DNA of 64,000 nucleotides from Mobula hypostoma (Eukaryota). The DNA is taken from positions 7,750,001-7,814,000 of the forward strand of contig NC_086125.1 of assembly GCF_963921235.1 (NCBI RefSeq). Reading direction: 5' to 3'. Under the pieces are notes generated by a model. That model searched no databases. It saw only the letters and a list, made by a program, of their open reading frames with translations, and was not told the origin of the DNA. Of the stretch, positions 3,033-62,350 are shown piece after piece; position 1 is the stretch's first letter, and every line of letters starts with the position of its first letter. A program made the position numbers and the translations under genes.

Positions 3033-5157
3033 TGTTATAACGGGGGGCACTGGGAGTGGACACAAATGCAAGACACAGACACTGAAGTACAAGGAGCTGG
3101 ACTGGACTAGGCGTAGGGACGGGGCAGGACACAGACTAGGATCTGGGACAGGAGCACAGACTTGGGCTAGGACTTGGCTAGGAGAGTGGGACCAGGACAA
3201 GGAATGGGGAACAAGGAGCTTGGGCTTGGACTTCGAGCCAGAGACTGGACAAGGACCCAGAACCTGGGTCTTGACTCGGGCTCGGACTCTGGAACTAGGC
3301 AAGGAGATGATGTGGTCTTGGGAGACAGGAACCTGGGAGCCTAGGACGAGGACTGGACGCTCGGGGCCTTGGTCCAGAGCATGGGAACACGGAACCTTGG
3401 ACTTGAGAGAGGAACATGGAAAACAGAACCGGGACCCCTCCTTGGAACAGGACGTAGGGCCAGAACTCATACACAGAACACAGAGCCGGGACCCCTCCTT
3501 GGAACAGGACGTAGGGCCGGGACTCATACACAGAACACAGAGAGATAGTTCCACACAAGATAGTGGCAAACGACCAGACCTACCTAGTGAAGGCGTGGAC
3601 ACAGAGATGGTTCCCAACCCAAGGTAGCGGCAAATGGCCCAACCTACCTAGCGAAGGCGTGGACACAGAGACAGTTCCCAACAACGATAGGCAGTTCCTT
3701 ATCTAGACATTGCAAGGCTCCGGTCTTACTCCGGCGGTAGAACTTAATGGTGAAACAGGCAAGGCTTCAGAAGGAAGGGGAAGAGAAGGGAACAGTCCAG
3801 ACTCAGGGTAACAGCAAAGATGGCCTGACTTACCCCACAGAGGCGAGAACAGGATACTGACGAGACAAACAAGCTCCCACACTCGAACCCAGGGCCACTT
3901 ATATTCCCAGCCCCAAGTTGAGCATCAGCTGCCTATGATTAAGCCCAAATGAAACAAAGGACAGCCTGAAGACCAGTAGTCCGGAGTCCATGGACCAGAC
4001 TGTGAACCAGAACGCGGAAGTCATGGAGCGGACCATGACAGTACCCCCCCACCCCCCATGGGATCCTCCGGGTGAGCGAAGAGGCTCTCCAGGACTAAGG
4101 ACAACCTGGGCGGGTCTGGGGGGGGGTGGTATTCAATCAGGAGGGAACCCAGGATGATGAGAGTTAGATGGCAGTGTCTGCGTTGCTGGGTCCATTTATG
4201 GCTGGTTCATTCTGTCATAACAGGGAGTGCTGGGAGCGGACCCAAATGCAAGACACAGACACTGAAGTACTAGGAACTGGACTGCACTAGGTTTAGGGAT
4301 GGGACAGGACTCAGACTAGGAGCTGGGACAGGAACACAGACTTGGGCTAGGACTTGGATAGGAAAGCGGGACCAAGACAAGGAACTGGGAACAAAGAGCC
4401 TGGGCTTGGACTCCGAGCCAGAGGCTGGACAAGGACCCAGAACCTGGGTCTTGACTTGGGCTTGGACCCCGGAACTAGGCGAGGAGATGACGAGGCTTAG
4501 CCAGGACCCCTCCTTGAGAACAGGACATAGGGCCGGGACTCAAACACAGAACACAGAGAGACAGTTCCCAACACAAGGTAGCGGCAAACGGCTGGACATA
4601 CCTAGTGAAGGCATGGACACAGAGACAGTTCCCTACACAAGGTAGCGGTAAATGGCCGGACCTACCTAGCGAAGATGTGGACACAGAGATGGTTCCCGAC
4701 TCAATGTAGTGGCAAACAGCCAGACCTACCTAGTGAAGGTGTGGATACAGAGAGAGTTCCCAACAATGATAGACAGTTCCTTATCTAGACGCAGCAAGAC
4801 TCCGGTCTTGCTCCAGCGGTAGAACGTGGAGACAAAACAGGCAAGGCTTCAGAAAGAAGGGGAAGAGAAGGGAACAGTCCAGCCTCAGGGTAACAGCAAA
4901 GACAGCCTGGCTTATCCATTGGAGGCAAGGACAGGAAGGGACAGATCCAACTGCAGGGTAATGGCAAAGATGGCCTGACTTACCCCATGGAGGTGAGGAC
5001 GGGATACTGACAAGATGAACCAGCCACCACACTCGAACCCAGAGCCACTTATATTCCCAGCCCCAAGACGAGCATCAGGTGCCTATGATTAAGCCCAACT
5101 GAAACAAGGGACGGCCGGAAGACCCTGAGTCTGGAGTCCACGGACTGGACCATGACA
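3033..5157 (-). mobile_element. Mini LTR retroelement (Gypsy, Tf1/sushi-like): LTR 4213-5157, 172-bp internal part, LTR 3033-4040
   Basis: TG...CA ends, 5-bp TSD TAGAA (3028-3032 / 5158-5162), PPT GGGGGGTGGGGGGGTAC at 4041-4057, ATGGACCCAGCA (MDPA) at 4195, self-priming PBS at 4199-4210. Confidence 0.85.
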
Positions 5158-6111
5158 TAGAATTGTGATCAACATCTCCAAGATGCTCTCCCACTGAGAG
5201 ACCTGACAACTGACCAGGTTCATTTCCCGATACCAGATCAAGTACAGCCTCTCCTCTTGTAGGCTTATATACATATTGTGTCAAGAAAACTTCCTGAACA
5301 CACCTAACAAACTCCGCCCCATCTAAACCCCTCATTCTAGGGAGATGCCAATCAATATTTGGGAAATTAAAATCTCCCACCACAACAACCCTGTTATTAT
5401 TACACCTTTCCAGAATCTGTCTCCCTATCTGCTCCTCAATGTCCCTGTTACTATTGGGTGGTCTATAAAAACAGCCAGTAGGGTTATTGACCCCTTGCTG
5501 TTCCTAGCTTACACCCACAGAGACTCCGTAGACAATCCCTCCATGACTTGCTCCTTTTCTGCAGCCATGACACTATGTCTGATCAGCAGTGCTGTGCGCC
5601 CACCTCTTTTGGCTCCCTCCCTGTCCTTTCTGAAACATTTAAAGCCTGGCACTTGAAGTAACCATTCCTTCCCCTGAGCCATCCAAGTCTCTGTAATGGC
5701 CACAACATCATTGCTCCAAGTGTTGATCCATGCTCTAATCTTCTCGCATTGAAATAGACACATCTCAAACCATCCATCTGAGCGCATCCTTTTCCTATCA
5801 CCTGCCTATCCTCCCTCTCACACTGCATGCAAGCTTCCTCTATTTGTGAGCCAACCACCCTTTCCTCCGTCTCTTCAGTTCGATTCCCACCCTCCCAGCA
5901 ATTCTAATTTAAACTCTCCCCAATAGCCTTAGCAAACCTCCCCGCCAGGATATTACCCCCCCCCCCCCGCAAGGATTCAAGTGCAATCCCTCCTTTTTGT
6001 ACAGGTCAATCCTGCCCCAAAGGAGGTCCCAATGATCCAGAAATCTAAATCCCTGCCCCCTGCTCCAATTCCTCAGCCACACATTTATCCTTCACCTCAT
6101 ACTTTTCCTAT

Positions 6112-6682
6112 GGGGACCGTGCACAATCCTGATTTGATGGAGACAGATGTGAGAGCACAGCGGAACATCTGAAAAACTTCTGAAATTCCTGCTTTGCTAC
6201 TGTGTGGTAACCGGAATCTCCGGAGCTGAAGGCCCCGAAATCTTCGGCTTTGCGTGTTTCAGCGGCCGGGGAGAGGTCGAGGGCACTCGGGAAGCTGTAT
6301 CTGAGAGGCTGATCAGAAGCTCGGAGTTTTCGGACGGATGGACTCAGGGTCGGCTGCTTCCAAGGTATCGGCAAATTGACGTGCCTGGAGGTTTATGGCA
6401 GGGTGTTTCTCCCCTCTGCCGCCTGCTATCGGGGACTCGGGAGTCGATCGACTCGGGACTTTGAGACTTTATTTACTATGCCTATGGTCTGTTCTTTATC
6501 AAATTACGGTATTGCTTTGCACTGCTGTAACTATATGTTATAATTATTGGTTCTGTCAGTGTTAGTCTTTGGTCTGTCTTGTTTTCTGTGATATCACTCC
6601 GGAGAAACATTGTATCATTTCTTAATGCATGTATGCATTTCTAAATGACAATAAAAGAGGACTGAGTGTTCTCATAATCTAA
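6112..6682 (+). mobile_element. Non-autonomous LINE-derived element, copy 2 (5'-truncated)
   Basis: Same body and TGACAATAAAAGAGGACT...TAATCTAA tail as 2364-3006. Confidence 0.8.
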
Positions 6683-7600
6683 CTCCTCGTAGTCTGTTTT
6701 CAGGACCTCCTCCCTTTTCCTACCGATGTGGTTGGTACCAATATGTACCATGACCTCTGGCTGTTCTCCTTCCCACTTCAGGAGCCCACGGACATGATCA
6801 GAAACATCCTGGATCCTGACACCTGGGAGGCAAACTACCATCCATGTTTCTTTCCTGCGTTCACAGAATCACCTGTCTGACCCCCTAACTACAGAGTCCC
6901 TAATCACTGCTGCCATCCTCTTCCTTTCCCTACCCTTGTGAGCCACAGGGCCAGACTCTGTGCTAGAGGCGTGACCACTGTTGTTTCCCCCAGGGAGGCC
7001 GTCTCCCCCAACAGTACTCAAACAGGAGTAGTTATTGTTAAGGGGGACAGCCACTGGGGTACTGTCTAGCATCTGCCTCTTGCCCTTCCCTCTCCTGACT
7101 GTTACCCACTTCTCTGTCTCCTGTGGTCCTGGGGTGCTATACCTGCCTATAGCTCCTCTCTATCGCCTTCGCATTTTCCCTGACCAGACGAAGGTCATCG
7201 AGCTGCAGCTCCAGTTCCCTAACCCGGTCCCTAAGGAGCTGCAGCTCGACGTACCTGGTTTAGATGTGGCCCTCCAGGAGGCTGGGAGTCTCCCGGACTT
7301 CCCACATCTGACACCGAGCACTGAAAACCGGTCTCACACACATACTTCCTGTCTGTAATTTTACACGTAACGTACCTCGCCTCGACCCTTTATCGCCGAA
7401 ACCCCGTTGAGCCAAAGACTTCCTGCTCTGTCTCCCACTACTCAGTCGCCCGCTCCTCCGACGCCCGCTGTATAAAGTTGTCTTCTTTTGAAACTCTTCC
7501 CACTGTTCTCACTGGCTGACCTCCACGCGCTTGCACAGACGTGCCCTGTTCAAACTGCTGAAGAAATATCTTTTAAATATTGTATTTGTACCTGCCTTTA

Positions 7601-10600
7601 GGTTCGTCCATCGTCGACGTCGATGAAGAGCTCGACACTATTGGTCACTTTGAGACTGGATGCGGTGAGTCCGAAGATGAGTGGTCAGGCCAATTCGGGC
7701 ACGGAGTGTCCTGGCACATGTTGGGCAGACATGTGTGGGCACTGCAGTTGTTGCGCTGGTGGCTCTGGACTTGCACAGCTCGCGCGTATGATGTGCTTCA
7801 GCAACGCGCCTTGCTTCGTAACCCTGGCAGCCCTTGTGGATGAGGCCGTGCCAGGTAGGGCGGTTTTGTGCCAGCTTTTCCCAGGTGGTCGTGTCTATGT
7901 CAAGCGACTTCAGGGAGGCCTTTTAGTATGTCTTTGTAAAGTTTCTTCCGCCCTCCATGCGAGCGCCTTCCAGCAGAGAGTTCCCCAGAAAGGAGCTGCT
8001 TGGGTATGCGCTCGTCCGGCATGCGGATGACATGACCTGCCCACCGGGTCTGTGCTCTCATCAGCAGTGTGTGGACTGATGGTAGACTTGCTCTGAAGAG
8101 AACTTCAGTGTCCGGTACTTTATCAGCCATCTGATGCCTTATATTCTGAGAAGCCAAGTCATGTGGAAATGGTTGAGCTGTCCAACATGCCTTCGATACA
8201 CAGTCCACGTTTCACAGGCATACAGGAGGGTAGTGAGTACCACGGCTCTGTAGACCTTCAGTTTTGTTGCTGGGCTGATTCCTCGACGTTCCCATACAGT
8301 GGAGCGCAGTCTACCGAAAGCAGAACTTGCCTTTGCTATTTTGCAGTTAACTTCTGTATCAATAGTCACTGCTCGGGAGAGGGTGCTGCCAAGGTAAGTA
8401 AACTAGTCCATCGCCTGTAGTTTCTGTCCTATGATTGTGACTTTCGGTTCTGTGTACAGTGCATGAGGGGCAGGCTGGTGGATGACTTCGGTATTTTTGA
8501 TGTTGATGGGGAGTCCAAAGTTGTCACAAGCCGTGGAGAATTTGTCCATATTGACTTGCATCTCCGGCTCCGAGCCGGCATACAGGGCGCTGTCATCGGC
8601 AAAGAGGAAGTCCCTTCACTTTGGTAATAGCCCGAAGTCTCCTCAGGTTGAAGAGCTTCCCATCCACTCTGTACTTGAGGCTGATTCCAGCGTCACTGTC
8701 CTGGAAGGCATCATTCAGCGTGGCCGTAAACATCATGCTGAACAGTGTGGGTGAGAGCACACAGCCCTGTTTGACACCATTGGTGACTGGGAACGCCTCA
8801 AAGGATTCTCCGCCGTCCAGCACTCTCGCCATCATGCCATCATGGAACTGGCGTACTACCTGAATGAATTTGGTGGGGCAGCCGAGCTTTGACATGATCC
8901 TCCACAGGCCTTGTCGGCAGACAGTGTCGGAGGCTTTCGTGAGGTCAACAAAAGTTGTGTGGAGTTTGCGATTCTGCTCCTGACACTTCTCCTGAAGTTC
9001 CCGTGCGGCAAAAATCATGTCAATGGTCCCACCACCTTTGCGAAAGCCACACTGTGGCTCTGGCAGCAGGCCCAGCTCCAGATGAGTGACCAGACGATTT
9101 AGCAGGACTCTGCAAGGGTTTTTCCTGCGATGCAGAGCAGCGAGATTCCTCGGTGGTTGTCGCATACTTGTCGATTGCCCTTCCTCTTGTAGAGGTGTAA
9201 GATGGATGCATCTTTAAGTTCCTGAGGAATGGATCCTTGCTTCCAGAAAGACTGGAACAACTTTGTGAGCTTCTCAATAAACACACGACCACCGGCTTTG
9301 TAGATCTCTGCAGGTATGGCGTCTGCCCCGGGGCTTTGCCACTGGCTAGCTGGCTGTCAGCTTCCGTGACTTCGGCTACTACCGGTGGGTTATCCATGGC
9401 GCTGTTGATGTCGACCTGGGGAATCCTGTCTATCGCCTCATTGTTAATAGATGACGGTCGGTTGAGGACGGCTTCAAGGTGTTCAGCCCATCTCTGCAGG
9501 ATCTGAGCCTTCTCTGTAATGAGAGTTGTACCATCTATACTCAGGAGGGGGGAACTCCCAATAGACTGAGGTCCGTAGAGAGTGCTGAGGGCTTCATAGA
9601 ATCGTTTCAACTCGTTTCTGTCAGCGTATCCCTGTATTACATCTGCCTTGGCGCTCAGCCAGGCATCTTGCATCTTACGCAGTGTATTGTGGACTGTCCT
9701 GCGAGCAATGGTAAAGGCGTTTTTCTTGGCAGCCGATGATGGATCGTTCTGGTGGGCACGATGAAGGCGGTACTTTTCAACAAGCAGAGCCTGTATCTCC
9801 TCATCGTTCTCATCCAACCAGTCTTGCTGCTTGCGGGTAGAGAGCCCTAGCATCTTCAGTGCAGATGAATGGACAGCATCCTTGAAGCGATCCCAGTCGT
9901 CCACAGCGCTGCCTGCAAGGTCAGTAAGATTGGTTTCTAAATCTTCAGCCAGTGCTGAAGCTATGCTGGAGTTCTTCCGCCTGGCCACATTGATTCTTTT
10001 CATATCCTTGCTTCCTTGTGGTCACCTCTTGGGTCTGATGCGGAGCTTCATTTTAGAGACGGTGAGCCTGTGATCTGTCCAGCAGTCAGCACCACACATG
10101 GCCTTGGTCACTCTGACACCCTGCCTGTCTTTTCTCCTCACAATGACGTAGTCGATAAGATGCCAATGCTTAGAGCGGGGGTGCATCCAGGAGGTCTTGT
10201 TACGGGTAGGCAGGCGGAAAGTTGTGTTGGTGAGGAGCAGGTCGTGTGCTGCACAGGTTTTCAGTAAGAGTAGGCCGTTACTGTTACATTTGCCCACTCC
10301 ATGTCTCCCAATGACACCCTGTCAGGCTGCAGAGTTGCACCCTACTCTTGCATTGAAGTCGCCGAGCAAGATCAGCTTGTTGGTGATGCTCACTGCTGAT
10401 AGTAGGGCGTCTAGTTCTTCATAGAACCTGTCTTTTGTCACGTCTGGGTTGGTCATTGTGGGGGCATAGGCGCTGATCAGAGTGGCTTGACTTCTGTTCT
10501 GTAGCGGAAGCTGTAGTGTCATGAGCCGGTCATTCACGCCCTCGGGGAGACTGGCAAGTTTCCGAACAAGGTGACTCCTGACGGTGAATCCAACTCCAGC

Positions 10601-11652
10601 ATCAGGACAGTCATCGCTGCCGCGACCGCTCCAGAAAAGGTGTATCCACCTCCAGTTTCAGTCAGCTGACCTACGTTGGCAAGACAAGTCTCACTCAGGG
10701 CTGCAATGCCAATGTTGTATCTTGCAAGCTCTCTGGCAACTAAGGCTGTTCCTCTCTCTGGCCTGTTTGCTGCCGAGTTGTCCAATAGCGTGCGTACCTT
10801 CCAAGTGCCAATGGTGAGCGGTGTCACCTTGCGTTTTGTTGTGTTTGTTTGATCACCGAGACGCAATCCCCGCCAGCTGTGGTAAACTGGCCAGGGTGTA
10901 ATGAAGGGGCACCTTTTCTAGCCCCTTCCTCATACTACGGAGGTGAGCAGTGCGTTCCTAAAGAGGGCTGCTCAGTCGCCCAGCTAGACGCCGAGTTTCA
11001 CTGCTGCTTCGGTCAGCGAGAAACGACCATTAGACCTGAGCCGCCTGTGTGCAGGTCCGTGACTACAGCTCCCGGTGTATCCACACCTGCTGCTTCGCCA
11101 CTCGCCCACCGCCACACGACTTCACAGGTTGAGGGTGATGATGATGGTGTCGAGACTAGCGCGTGATTTGGATTTAAGTGAGGGAGAGTTGCGCAGCGTC
11201 AGCCTCACTCTCTCTTCCCAATTCCCATCTGGGTCCAGTGGCAAGACAGAGTCGAGACGGCTGGAGATGGGACTAGGCGTAGTGGATGACCAGGACGTCT
11301 TCTGTGTCTTGTCCTGCTCTACACGTTCCACAACACTTGCAGAGACCGCCTTCTTGACCGTTGGACCTTCCACTGGTCTCGTCCGCTCAGTCCACCGGAG
11401 TCTGTCTTCACATGCTGGGATAGACAACTCCCTATCTCACCGAGGGTTTGAGACCCGTCGGCTACCCTCACCTGGTTTAGCCGGCTTGTCGAAGCCGTTG
11501 CCCGGGGTGTGGCCGCTGTCGCACGCAAACAGCTACGGGAGCCACAGGTGAGAGCTGAGTGCCAGGTGAGGACCAAAGGTGGACTAACCGCCCTGAAAAG
11601 GACGCGACATGTTCCCCCACCAGAGGTGCTACCCCTCCCTGACACCCCATAG
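7601..11652 (-). mobile_element. Full-length RTE-clade (BovB-like) LINE, frameshifted
   Basis: APE (TIGTWKVRTL, AALSET, SAYAPT, GDFNA), RT (QCGFR, FVDLTKA, GVKQGC, FADD) and a C-terminal region. 10-bp TSD with 1 mismatch, CCTGCCTTTA 7591-7600 / CCTGTCTTTA 11653-11662, inside a CR1 3' fragment. Confidence 0.9.
11465..11648 (-). ncRNA. Candidate HDV-like self-cleaving ribozyme at the RTE 5' end
   Basis: P1 GGGGUGU/ACACCCC, P2 CUCACCUG/CAGGUGAG, P3 GGC/GCC, L3 UCCCGU plus an inserted hairpin, GGGCAAC, P4 CGGC/GCCG, J4/2 GCUAA (C at 11480). Folded by eye only. Confidence 0.7.
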
Positions 11653-11729
11653 CCTGTCTTTAACACTTCCACTGGCAGCTCGTTCCATTTATGCACCGCT
11701 CTCTGCACGAAGATATTGCCTCTCCTACT

Positions 11730-12060
11730 CACTGTCCGTTACGCTGTTGGCGTTTAGGGTAGCAATGCAGGTCCTCCATCTCTGTCTGTCCATACCGTCA
11801 CACAGAGATATAGAATGAGTCTTCATTGCTGTTTCTGCCACGATTCTTTTTGACTAGTCAGGGTTGTTAGCCCTGAGATGAAGCCCTGAACCGGTGGACC
11901 ACACTTAGTCTGTCCTCTACCCTTTGACCTGTTTGGCATGAGTGACCCTACCAGGAGCCAAAGTACAGGGCCCTGACTCCAGCCAGTGTAGCTCTCCTGG
12001 TGGTTGAGGCACACAGGTCTTCGATCTCTACAAGGTTATGATCATCTTGCAGGACATTGC
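11730..12060 (-). mobile_element. RTE-related short element fragment (same family as 61965-62350)
   Basis: Shares motifs such as GTTTAGGG(T/C)AGCAATG, GGGTTGTTAGCCCTG and CCCTTTGACCTG(T/C)TTGGCATG with the 62-kb copy. Confidence 0.5.
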
Positions 12061-61640: not shown

Positions 61641-61964
61641 CATCTGTCTACGGTCCGCTCCATACACTAGCCCTGAATCAGTTCACAGCCTCAAGCCCTC
61701 TCCTGCAGAGTTATCACCCAGACACTCTGTAGCAGTGAGGAACTTCTCTGCCTGATGAGCAATGCAGGCAGGAAGGCTCCAGGGGCACAGGCAGAAAAGC
61801 CCTGGAATGAGTGGCAAGTCAGCACTGTTAGTGTTCTATTTCCAGTGCACGAAAATAGAAATTAAGAAAATATGGGTAAAGGAGAACTTTGTAAAAACAA
61901 CTCAGCTCTCAGGATTTATTGTAGTGGTAGCCATGCTACTTTATGTGAATTGTGACTTACTTAC

Positions 61965-62350
61965 GGCCCATTACACCACTGGTGTTTAGGGCAGCAATGA
62001 AGGTCCTCCAGCTCAGGTGGTGTTGAGGGCTTCCTTCATCATGTCAGTAGCTTCCTCTCGGTTTTCTCTACTGTTCGTCATGGAAGTCCCGGGTGGAGAC
62101 TCAGGAATATCGTTGGACTTAGATGTAGAAGGATTCTTCGTTGCTGTGTCTGAAACAGTTTTGTTTCACAAGTTAGGGTTGTTAGCCCTGTGCTGAGAAC
62201 CAGTGAACAACTCTTCGTCTGGCTCTGCCCTTTGACCTGCTTGGCATGGGTGACCTACCAAGACCCAAAGCATGAAGCCCTGACTCCCATCAACATGGCC
62301 CACTGCATTATTGAGGCACAGACAAGGACCACAACAAGGGTGTGTTCCTC
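61965..62350 (-). mobile_element. RTE-related short element fragment
   Basis: Homologous to 11730-12060. Confidence 0.5.

Follow-up and report, generated by a model that had tools for sequence, protein, structure and literature searches.

An RTE-type LINE family, of which a decayed copy lies in the window (the whole 64,000-nt stretch of DNA analysed here), probably has a large self-cleaving ribozyme of the HDV-like type, ~195 nt long, at the very 5′ start of its elements, the window copy being a truncated relic of it. In the proposed architecture, the 5′ half would consist of P1, formed by the first seven bases of the element, G(G/U)GGUGU, a 3-nt linker, a ~95-nt P1.2-like stem-loop in J1/2 and a 10-bp P2, and the 3′ half of P3, L3 (UCC plus a 5-bp hairpin), P1′, GGGCAAC (the GG of which would form P1.1), a 6-bp P4, J4/2 with GCUAAAC and P2′. 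The element would be transcribed within a longer host read-through RNA, the ribozyme would cut 5′ of G1, and the freed RNA, starting at the first base of the element, would be passed on to translation and target-primed reverse transcription. That an HDV-like fold lies at the 5′ end of an RTE LINE had been proposed in a sequence-only reading of the window, and it is borne out here, the fold being conserved and covarying in six copies.

Among non-LTR retrotransposons, HDV-like ribozymes are found at the 5′ end of RTE, R4/Dong, Baggins, L1Tc and Drosophila R2 elements (PMC3774820; PMC7761336); the first of these sources, citing Ruminski et al. (2011), has RTE-clade elements cleaved at their 5′ junction. 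This kind of ribozyme is already established for RTE LINEs; the features that make the present one a variant are a hairpin in L3, a base of J1/2 that mimics P1, invisibility to Rfam and vertebrate hosts.

The LINE in the window and its relatives

Judged by its ORF architecture, the element is of the RTE type, the features of the RTE clade (a single long ORF that encodes APE at its N-terminus and also RT, no more than a short ORF upstream and a length of ~3–4 kb) being present. The window LINE is co-linear with a copy from Varanus komodoensis (L003) across 11651–7663 and keeps the order of APE then RT seen in intact relatives, but it is fragmented, its coding region being spread over stop-to-stop pieces in three frames with many breaks (Table 1). 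As read from the alignments, it is an old, frame-shifted insertion, 5′-truncated by six bases. The window sequence contains 0 N; self-BLAST of its 64,000 nt revealed no second copy of the element, and a covariance-model search of the window returned this single ribozyme locus and no other. RTE elements typically end without poly(A), in a short simple repeat; here the 3′ ends read ...GAAC followed by ATC (L002 and L003) or by ATCATCAT (L012), and the window copy is without an A-tail.

A 333-aa piece of the window LINE has relatives in Mobula birostris (83%), V. komodoensis, Bufo, shrimps, corals and cestodes, several of which, including that of V. komodoensis, bear the NCBI name 'craniofacial development protein 2', presumably a BovB/RTE-derived gene. 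Intact relatives contain ORFs of 1,060–1,085 aa with PF03372/PF14529 (Exo_endo_phos) and PF00078 (RVT_1) on contigs of ~4.1–4.3 kb, and an intact ORF2 stands behind the ribozyme in L012 (1,070 aa) and L037 (1,085 aa). At the DNA level, the window copy (11651–7663) is 72–78% identical to the V. komodoensis copies L002 and L003, the lizard and toad (Bufo bufo, L004) copies are 81% identical to each other, and recognisable copies also occur in a shrimp (Penaeus indicus, L005), a soft coral (Xenia, L006) and cestodes; this patchy host spread of the family suggests that horizontal transfer may have taken place.

The ~195-nt 5′ segment was compared in six sequences: the window copy, two V. komodoensis copies reached via their proteins (L002 and L003), two metagenome contigs from a core-pattern scan (L012 and L022) and a freshwater-metagenome contig reached via its intact ORF2 (L037). 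The core pattern fixed GGCUCCC, GCC, GGGCAAC and GGCNAAAC and put no constraint on P1, P2, P4 or the hairpin, so that the invariance of the four fixed strings in L012 and L022 is by construction. The metagenome scan gave 21 matches, only L012 and L022 being homologues; the other 19 were rejected because P1 or P2 was unconvincing or homology was lacking altogether. Both pattern scans of viral contigs gave no match, the protein scan of genome contigs confirmed no relative, and the four bacterial matches in the DNA pattern scan of genome contigs were set aside as chance, three of them scoring 9–10 bits with the model R1 and the fourth not matching it. The ribozyme is absent from the 5′-truncated relatives of Mobula (L001), Bufo (L004), Penaeus (L005, ending in an AT microsatellite), Xenia (L006) and Sparganum (L007).

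The RTE LINE is itself nested in another repeat (window 11660–11980 and 61958–62287), which reads through in a '...QRAVHKWNELPVEVL...' type frame and of which the part flanking the LINE at 11726–11980 is 77–79% identical to the second copy near the window end. Just 3′ of the RTE element, translations judged by eye point to fragments of a different LINE (window 5078–6868, minus strand), with pieces similar to an endonuclease and, from an upstream ORF, a piece that resembles the esterase-type ORF1 of CR1/L2-like elements.

Conserved helices and covariation

The motifs from which the sequence-only reading had built its ribozyme all recur, on the minus strand, at the positions given there: GGGGUGU at 11648–11642, ACACCCC, CUCACCUG and CAGGUGAG, GGC and GCC, UCCCGU(A), the hairpin, GGGCAAC, GCUAA and a second CCUCACCUGG. 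Its assignments of the catalytic core (GGGCAAC, C11480, P2, P3 and P4) are likewise supported, although two helices had been drawn too short: P2 exists and extends to 10 bp (11554–11545 with 11474–11465), and P4, described as 4 bp with an 8-nt loop, is a 6-bp helix closed by a CGAC tetraloop. Among the six copies, GGGCAAC is kept in four, with AGGUAAC in L003 and GGACAAC in L037, and the GGC that follows P4 and includes the C of J4/2 is invariant; in the partial Rfam match described below it falls at the corresponding position of RF02682, and the C at 11480 is the putative catalytic cytosine.

Table 1. Features of the LINE, its 5′ segment and the first base of its relatives. Coordinates are window positions unless a contig is named; A4 and A6 are the alignments defined in the text.
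Feature	Position	Strand	Pairing, basis or remark
Decayed RTE-type LINE, ~4.05 kb	7601–11652	(-)	Ribozyme/5′ UTR, APE and RT remnants, 3′ end ...GATGGACGAAC(C)
APE endonuclease remnants	~10917–10025	(-)	Stop-to-stop pieces
RT remnants	~9356–8100	(-)	Pfam RVT_1, E 1e-17 on 8593–9165
Target-site duplication, 5′ copy, TAAAGACAGG	11653–11662	(-)	9/10 match to 7600–7591
Target-site duplication, 3′ copy, TAAAGGCAGG	7591–7600	(-)	Directly past the 3′ end of the LINE
UAU, remainder of the family 5′ terminus (U7 of P1 plus A8–U9 linker)	11649–11651	(-)	Alignments A4 and A6
Structured J1/2 domain, P1.2-like long stem-loop	11557–11647	(-)	RNAalifold consensus; 32 pairs in the A6 count; window MFE fold agrees
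Base of the J1/2 domain	11647–11631 with 11571–11557	(-)	'P1' and 'alternative P2' regions of the sequence-only reading
Second CCUCACCUGG	11571–11562	(-)	3′ strand, base of the J1/2 stem-loop
P2 5′ strand, CUCUCACCUG	11545–11554	(-)	10 bp with 11474–11465; contains the previously read CUCACCUG (11552–11545)
P2 3′ strand, CAGGUGAGGG	11465–11474	(-)	Motif search, A6; contains the previously read CAGGUGAG (11474–11467)
P3 5′ strand, GGC	11541–11543	(-)	Pairs with 11513–11511; invariant in 6/6
P3 3′ strand, GCC	11511–11513	(-)	A6
L3: UCCCGUA, inserted hairpin, then G	11514–11540	(-)	Hairpin in 6/6 copies
L3 hairpin, GCUGU-UUGCGUGCG-ACAGC	Stem 11533–11529/11519–11515, loop 11528–11520	(-)	A6
Candidate P1.1	CC 11539–11538 with GG 11503–11502	(-)	Proposed pairing
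P1 3′ strand (P1′), ACACCCC	11504–11510	(-)	Pairs with the first heptamer in five full-length relatives
J1/4, GGGCAA (its leading GG the proposed partner in P1.1)	11498–11503	(-)	With C11497, the HDV-core string GGGCAAC
P4, CGGCUU-CGAC-AAGCCG, 6 bp, CGAC tetraloop	11482–11497 (11497–11492 with 11487–11482)	(-)	Fold, A6
J4/2, GCUAAAC, candidate catalytic C at 11480	11475–11481	(-)	GGC invariant in 6/6
First G of the element in relatives	L002:5656, L003:4115, L012:78, L022:3166(-), L037:159

Scans with HDV models and descriptors had been suggested as a check of the fold. No match at the gathering score was obtained from Rfam, the curated models of which include HDV_ribozyme, HDV-F-prausnitzii, drz-Agam and CPEB3, for the window, L002, L003, L012 or L022, and in a permissive scan (E ≤ 10) the sole match was a partial one, GGGCAAC...CCGGCUAA to the HDV-F-prausnitzii family (RF02682), with 13.2 bits and an E value of 6.6 against a gathering score of 44; the drz-Agam families of Rfam gave no match even at E ≤ 10. 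A post-hoc descriptor of the HDV type matched once in the window, versus 0.065 matches per window after dinucleotide shuffling (13 of 200 shuffles). A helices-only descriptor with G–U pairs allowed matched everywhere, had no evidential value and was dropped. The window alone is suggestive, not decisive, and the weight rests on conservation and covariation in the relatives.

Pairing was counted in a plain MAFFT alignment (A4) and in a covariance-model realignment to which the J1/2 domain had been added, with 65 pairs (A6). In A4, the HDV-type helices were 93.8% paired versus 32–49% with slid partners, and five pairs had changed on both sides. In A6, the counts of which are biased because some of the helices had served to fit it, 92.6% of the cells were paired versus 34–52% when slid, and 14 pairs had changed on both sides versus 1–4 when slid and 6.2 ± 1.7 when shuffled (reached in 0 of 500 shuffles), in a sample of only six sequences of which two are from one genome. 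Covariation of the helices among copies, which had been named as a check, is present: both-side changes were counted in P1, P2 and P4 and also in the hairpin of L3 and the domain in J1/2. The first pair of P1 is G1–C or G1–U in the five full-length relatives and the second is G–C in four copies and U–A in L012; P2 shows compensatory changes from C–G to U–A in L022 and from A–U to G–C in L037, P4 has two pairs changed on both sides from G–C to A–U or U–A, and the innermost pair of the L3 hairpin is U–A, U–G or C–G among the six copies. All helices of the nested double pseudoknot, in the order P1-P2-P3-(L3)-P3′-P1′-P4-P2′, are present in the five full-length relatives. P3 (invariant in 6/6) and P1.1 (in 5/6) have their complementary sequences with zero covariation signal, and the pseudoknotted core therefore rests on analogy with HDV.

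It is very unlikely that the likeness to HDV is coincidental and that the segment is instead a structured 5′ UTR that serves, for example, in translation, as an internal promoter or in binding the element's own protein. Such a role would fit the lack of an Rfam match at threshold, the invariance of P3 and P1.1, a fully nested and likewise fully conserved alternative that RNAalifold offers for the 3′ half (UGGC with GCYA, extending P2), and also the unrelated 5′ UTRs of sister RTE lineages with ORF2s ~64–82% identical (L029–L036, L038 and L039/L040). However, the long-range pairing of P1 covaries and sits precisely where the element begins; GGGCAAC and GGCUAA, as well as the order and spacing of P1, P2, P3, P1′, GG, P4, C and P2′, match HDV-type cores; and an arrangement of this kind is documented for RTE elements (PMC3774820).

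The 5′ end and the register of P1

The five full-length relatives all open with G(G/U)GGUGU-A(U/G)-GGGGUG..., and their upstream flanks are mutually unrelated. Target-site duplications adjoin the first G in the two V. komodoensis copies (ATATTGTCT in L002 and AATTATTTCCA[G] in L003), and carry more weight than the flanks of the metagenome repeat contigs, which can be chimeric. The common first G and the adjoining duplications indicate that the G opening the first heptamer is the first base of the family's RNA. The sequence-only reading had taken 11648 as G1 and 11648–11642 as P1, and had named as a check whether the 5′ ends of other full-length copies cluster there; the five relatives place the covarying P1 9 nt further upstream, at the first base of the element, and all five start at the G of that authentic heptamer.

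The window copy departs from this pattern. Its first base in common with the family is U7 (11651), with a single unmatched C before it, and G1–G6 of P1 are absent according to alignments A4 and A6; the only unpaired P1 cells in the A6 pair count are the bases flanking this copy. The 5′ boundary set by the target-site duplication (9/10) and its offset of 4 nt, CUAU, from 11648 had been read correctly, and the gap is explained by the 6-nt truncation.

In the ribozyme proposed here, the heptamer at 11648 belongs to J1/2. Unguided RNAalifold pairs the region of this second heptamer (columns 11–27) with the 3′ end of J1/2 (columns 92–106), with compensatory changes in the inner helices, and the MFE fold of the window copy itself shows the same pairing at the base of J1/2. 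In L012, P1′ reads ACACCAC, which is fully complementary to the first heptamer (GUGGUGU) but cannot pair with the second (GGGUAUU).

For the window copy taken by itself, the earlier register, with the second heptamer as P1 and the cut between 11649 and 11648, 3–4 nt inside the insertion, is conceivable yet unlikely to be the true one. The second heptamer can pair with ACACCCC at all seven positions, the remaining core is intact, a duplex of -11.8 kcal/mol is available and the length of J1/2 is flexible in HDV-like ribozymes (PMC4908430). Against this, the heptamer forms the base of the conserved J1/2 domain, and the predicted cost of releasing it, ~+12.0 kcal/mol, cancels the gain from the substitute P1; the equivalent heptamer of L012 cannot pair with P1′; the window copy has a 1-nt deletion in single-stranded L3 relative to its relatives (A6); and the LINE is dead. 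In addition, the UAU retained upstream of 11648 corresponds to templated U7-A8-U9, so that the RNA from which the window copy was made had not been cut at this position. On this energy balance, cleavage from the substitute heptamer at 11648 would be possible but unlikely.

The second CCUCACCUGG, thought earlier to compete for P2 and to act as a folding switch, does not behave as such: this upstream segment ignores the changes in the 3′ strand of P2 in L022 and L037, whereas the proximal P2 strand follows them. Nor does 'active or recently active' fit the window copy, as the strand with the authentic cleavage site is missing and the reading frame is in pieces; it is most likely a relic of the ribozyme rather than an active one. 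For annotation, G1 of the ribozyme shows where the 5′ end of the family truly lies and reveals small 5′ truncations.

The L3 hairpin and known ribozymes

The L3 hairpin is the unusual feature. It had been noticed in the window and is present in all six copies, in which UCC(C/A)(N)GUA, a 5-bp stem with a loop of 7–9 nt and a G lie between P3 and P3′. To our knowledge, L3 is a short, unbranched loop in the HDV-like ribozymes described so far; here, the U, the CC and the following G are present, but the hairpin is inserted in 6/6 copies and the partner of the U–G pair is not assignable. Without the hairpin L3 measures 8–9 nt, and the L3 of HDV, in HDV numbering, is 8–9 nt.

There would be no insertion in L3 if the 5-bp hairpin were P3 itself, its 7–9-nt loop L3 and GGC/GCC a spacer helix, and the hairpin does show some covariation while GGC/GCC shows none. 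This assignment is nevertheless extremely unlikely: GGC/GCC is 1 nt from P2 and 0 nt from P1′, like P3 of HDV, and UCC follows GGC as in the L3 of HDV, whereas the loop of the hairpin is without a CC for the GG, and 12 and 4 unpaired nt would be left at the P2/P3 and P3/P1 junctions.

The loop of the hairpin (A6 columns 137–146; window 11528–11520) is centred on CAUG, within a self-complementary hexamer: three copies have GCAUGC, the intact L012 has ACAUGU and the window GCGUGC. The hexamer could engage in a loop–loop contact, be a protein site or close a CAUG tetraloop with one additional pair. A more elaborate idea, which we regard as speculative and rather unlikely, is that the hairpin is a functional module wired into the active site, for regulation, protein binding or loop–loop dimerisation, and that the P1-like second heptamer gives two registers, working either as a switch or as a reserve cleavage-site strand with which copies that lack a few 5′ bases, such as that in the window, could still process themselves.

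With the ribozymes of other retrotransposons, the present one shares the position at the first base, the nested double-pseudoknot order, a 7-bp P1 that begins with G, the GG after P1′, the C of J4/2 and the presumed role of excising the RNA of the element from a read-through transcript (PMC3774820; PMC7761336). It differs in the hairpin of 19–21 nt within L3, in that no Rfam model detects the ribozyme of this RTE family, and in its hosts, which are vertebrates (a ray and a monitor lizard) and metagenome sources.

An architectural parallel may be drawn with drz-Agam-2-1, which is activated by a structured J1/2–P1.2 domain and a long P2 (PMC4908430). Both have a long, stable stem-loop in J1/2 with very short linkers to P1 and P2, and an extended P2, of 10 bp here and 12 bp there (PMC4908430). 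There is, however, no detectable similarity in sequence or model, and in the present ribozyme the base of J1/2 nearly repeats the P1 helix and L3 contains the extra hairpin. The genomic HDV ribozyme and that of Faecalibacterium prausnitzii (RF02682) have in common with it GGGCAAC after P1′, GGCUAA in J4/2, UCC at the start of L3 and, as proposed here, a 3-bp P3, whereas the match is limited to a partial one of 13 bits, J1/2 is ~100 nt long, L3 contains the insertion and a G1–C pair replaces G1–U in 4/6 of the P1′ strands.

HDV-like ribozymes have mostly been found with fixed structural descriptors and Rfam models, both of which the L3 helix and the ~100-nt J1/2 escape. As the family evades these tools and yet is conserved in the RTE elements of a ray, a lizard and metagenomes, HDV-like ribozymes may be under-counted in vertebrate LINEs. 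Whether the insertion in L3 is tolerated or used, it would be informative for the workings of the delta fold and for ribozyme engineering.

Some observations were also made on the 5′ ends of the sister lineages. The element represented by L029–L036, from Tara Oceans and other marine metagenomes, has an ORF2 73% identical to that of L012 and an unrelated 5′ UTR; its independent insertions all start at (GG)CAGTGGGCAGATATTC, and no Rfam family matches its first ~200 nt. In L038 (69–260), another sister RTE with an ORF2 79% identical to that of L012, no convincing P2 or J4/2 was found; the element starts with GGGGGGU, and ~110 nt downstream ACC-UCCACGU-GGU-ACCCCCU-GG resembles P3, a canonical 7-nt L3, P3′, P1′ and P1.1, with no L3 hairpin. 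The contig L040 opens with an inverted copy of a segment of its own 5′ UTR (1–70 versus 180–260), which is probably a repeat assembly artefact.
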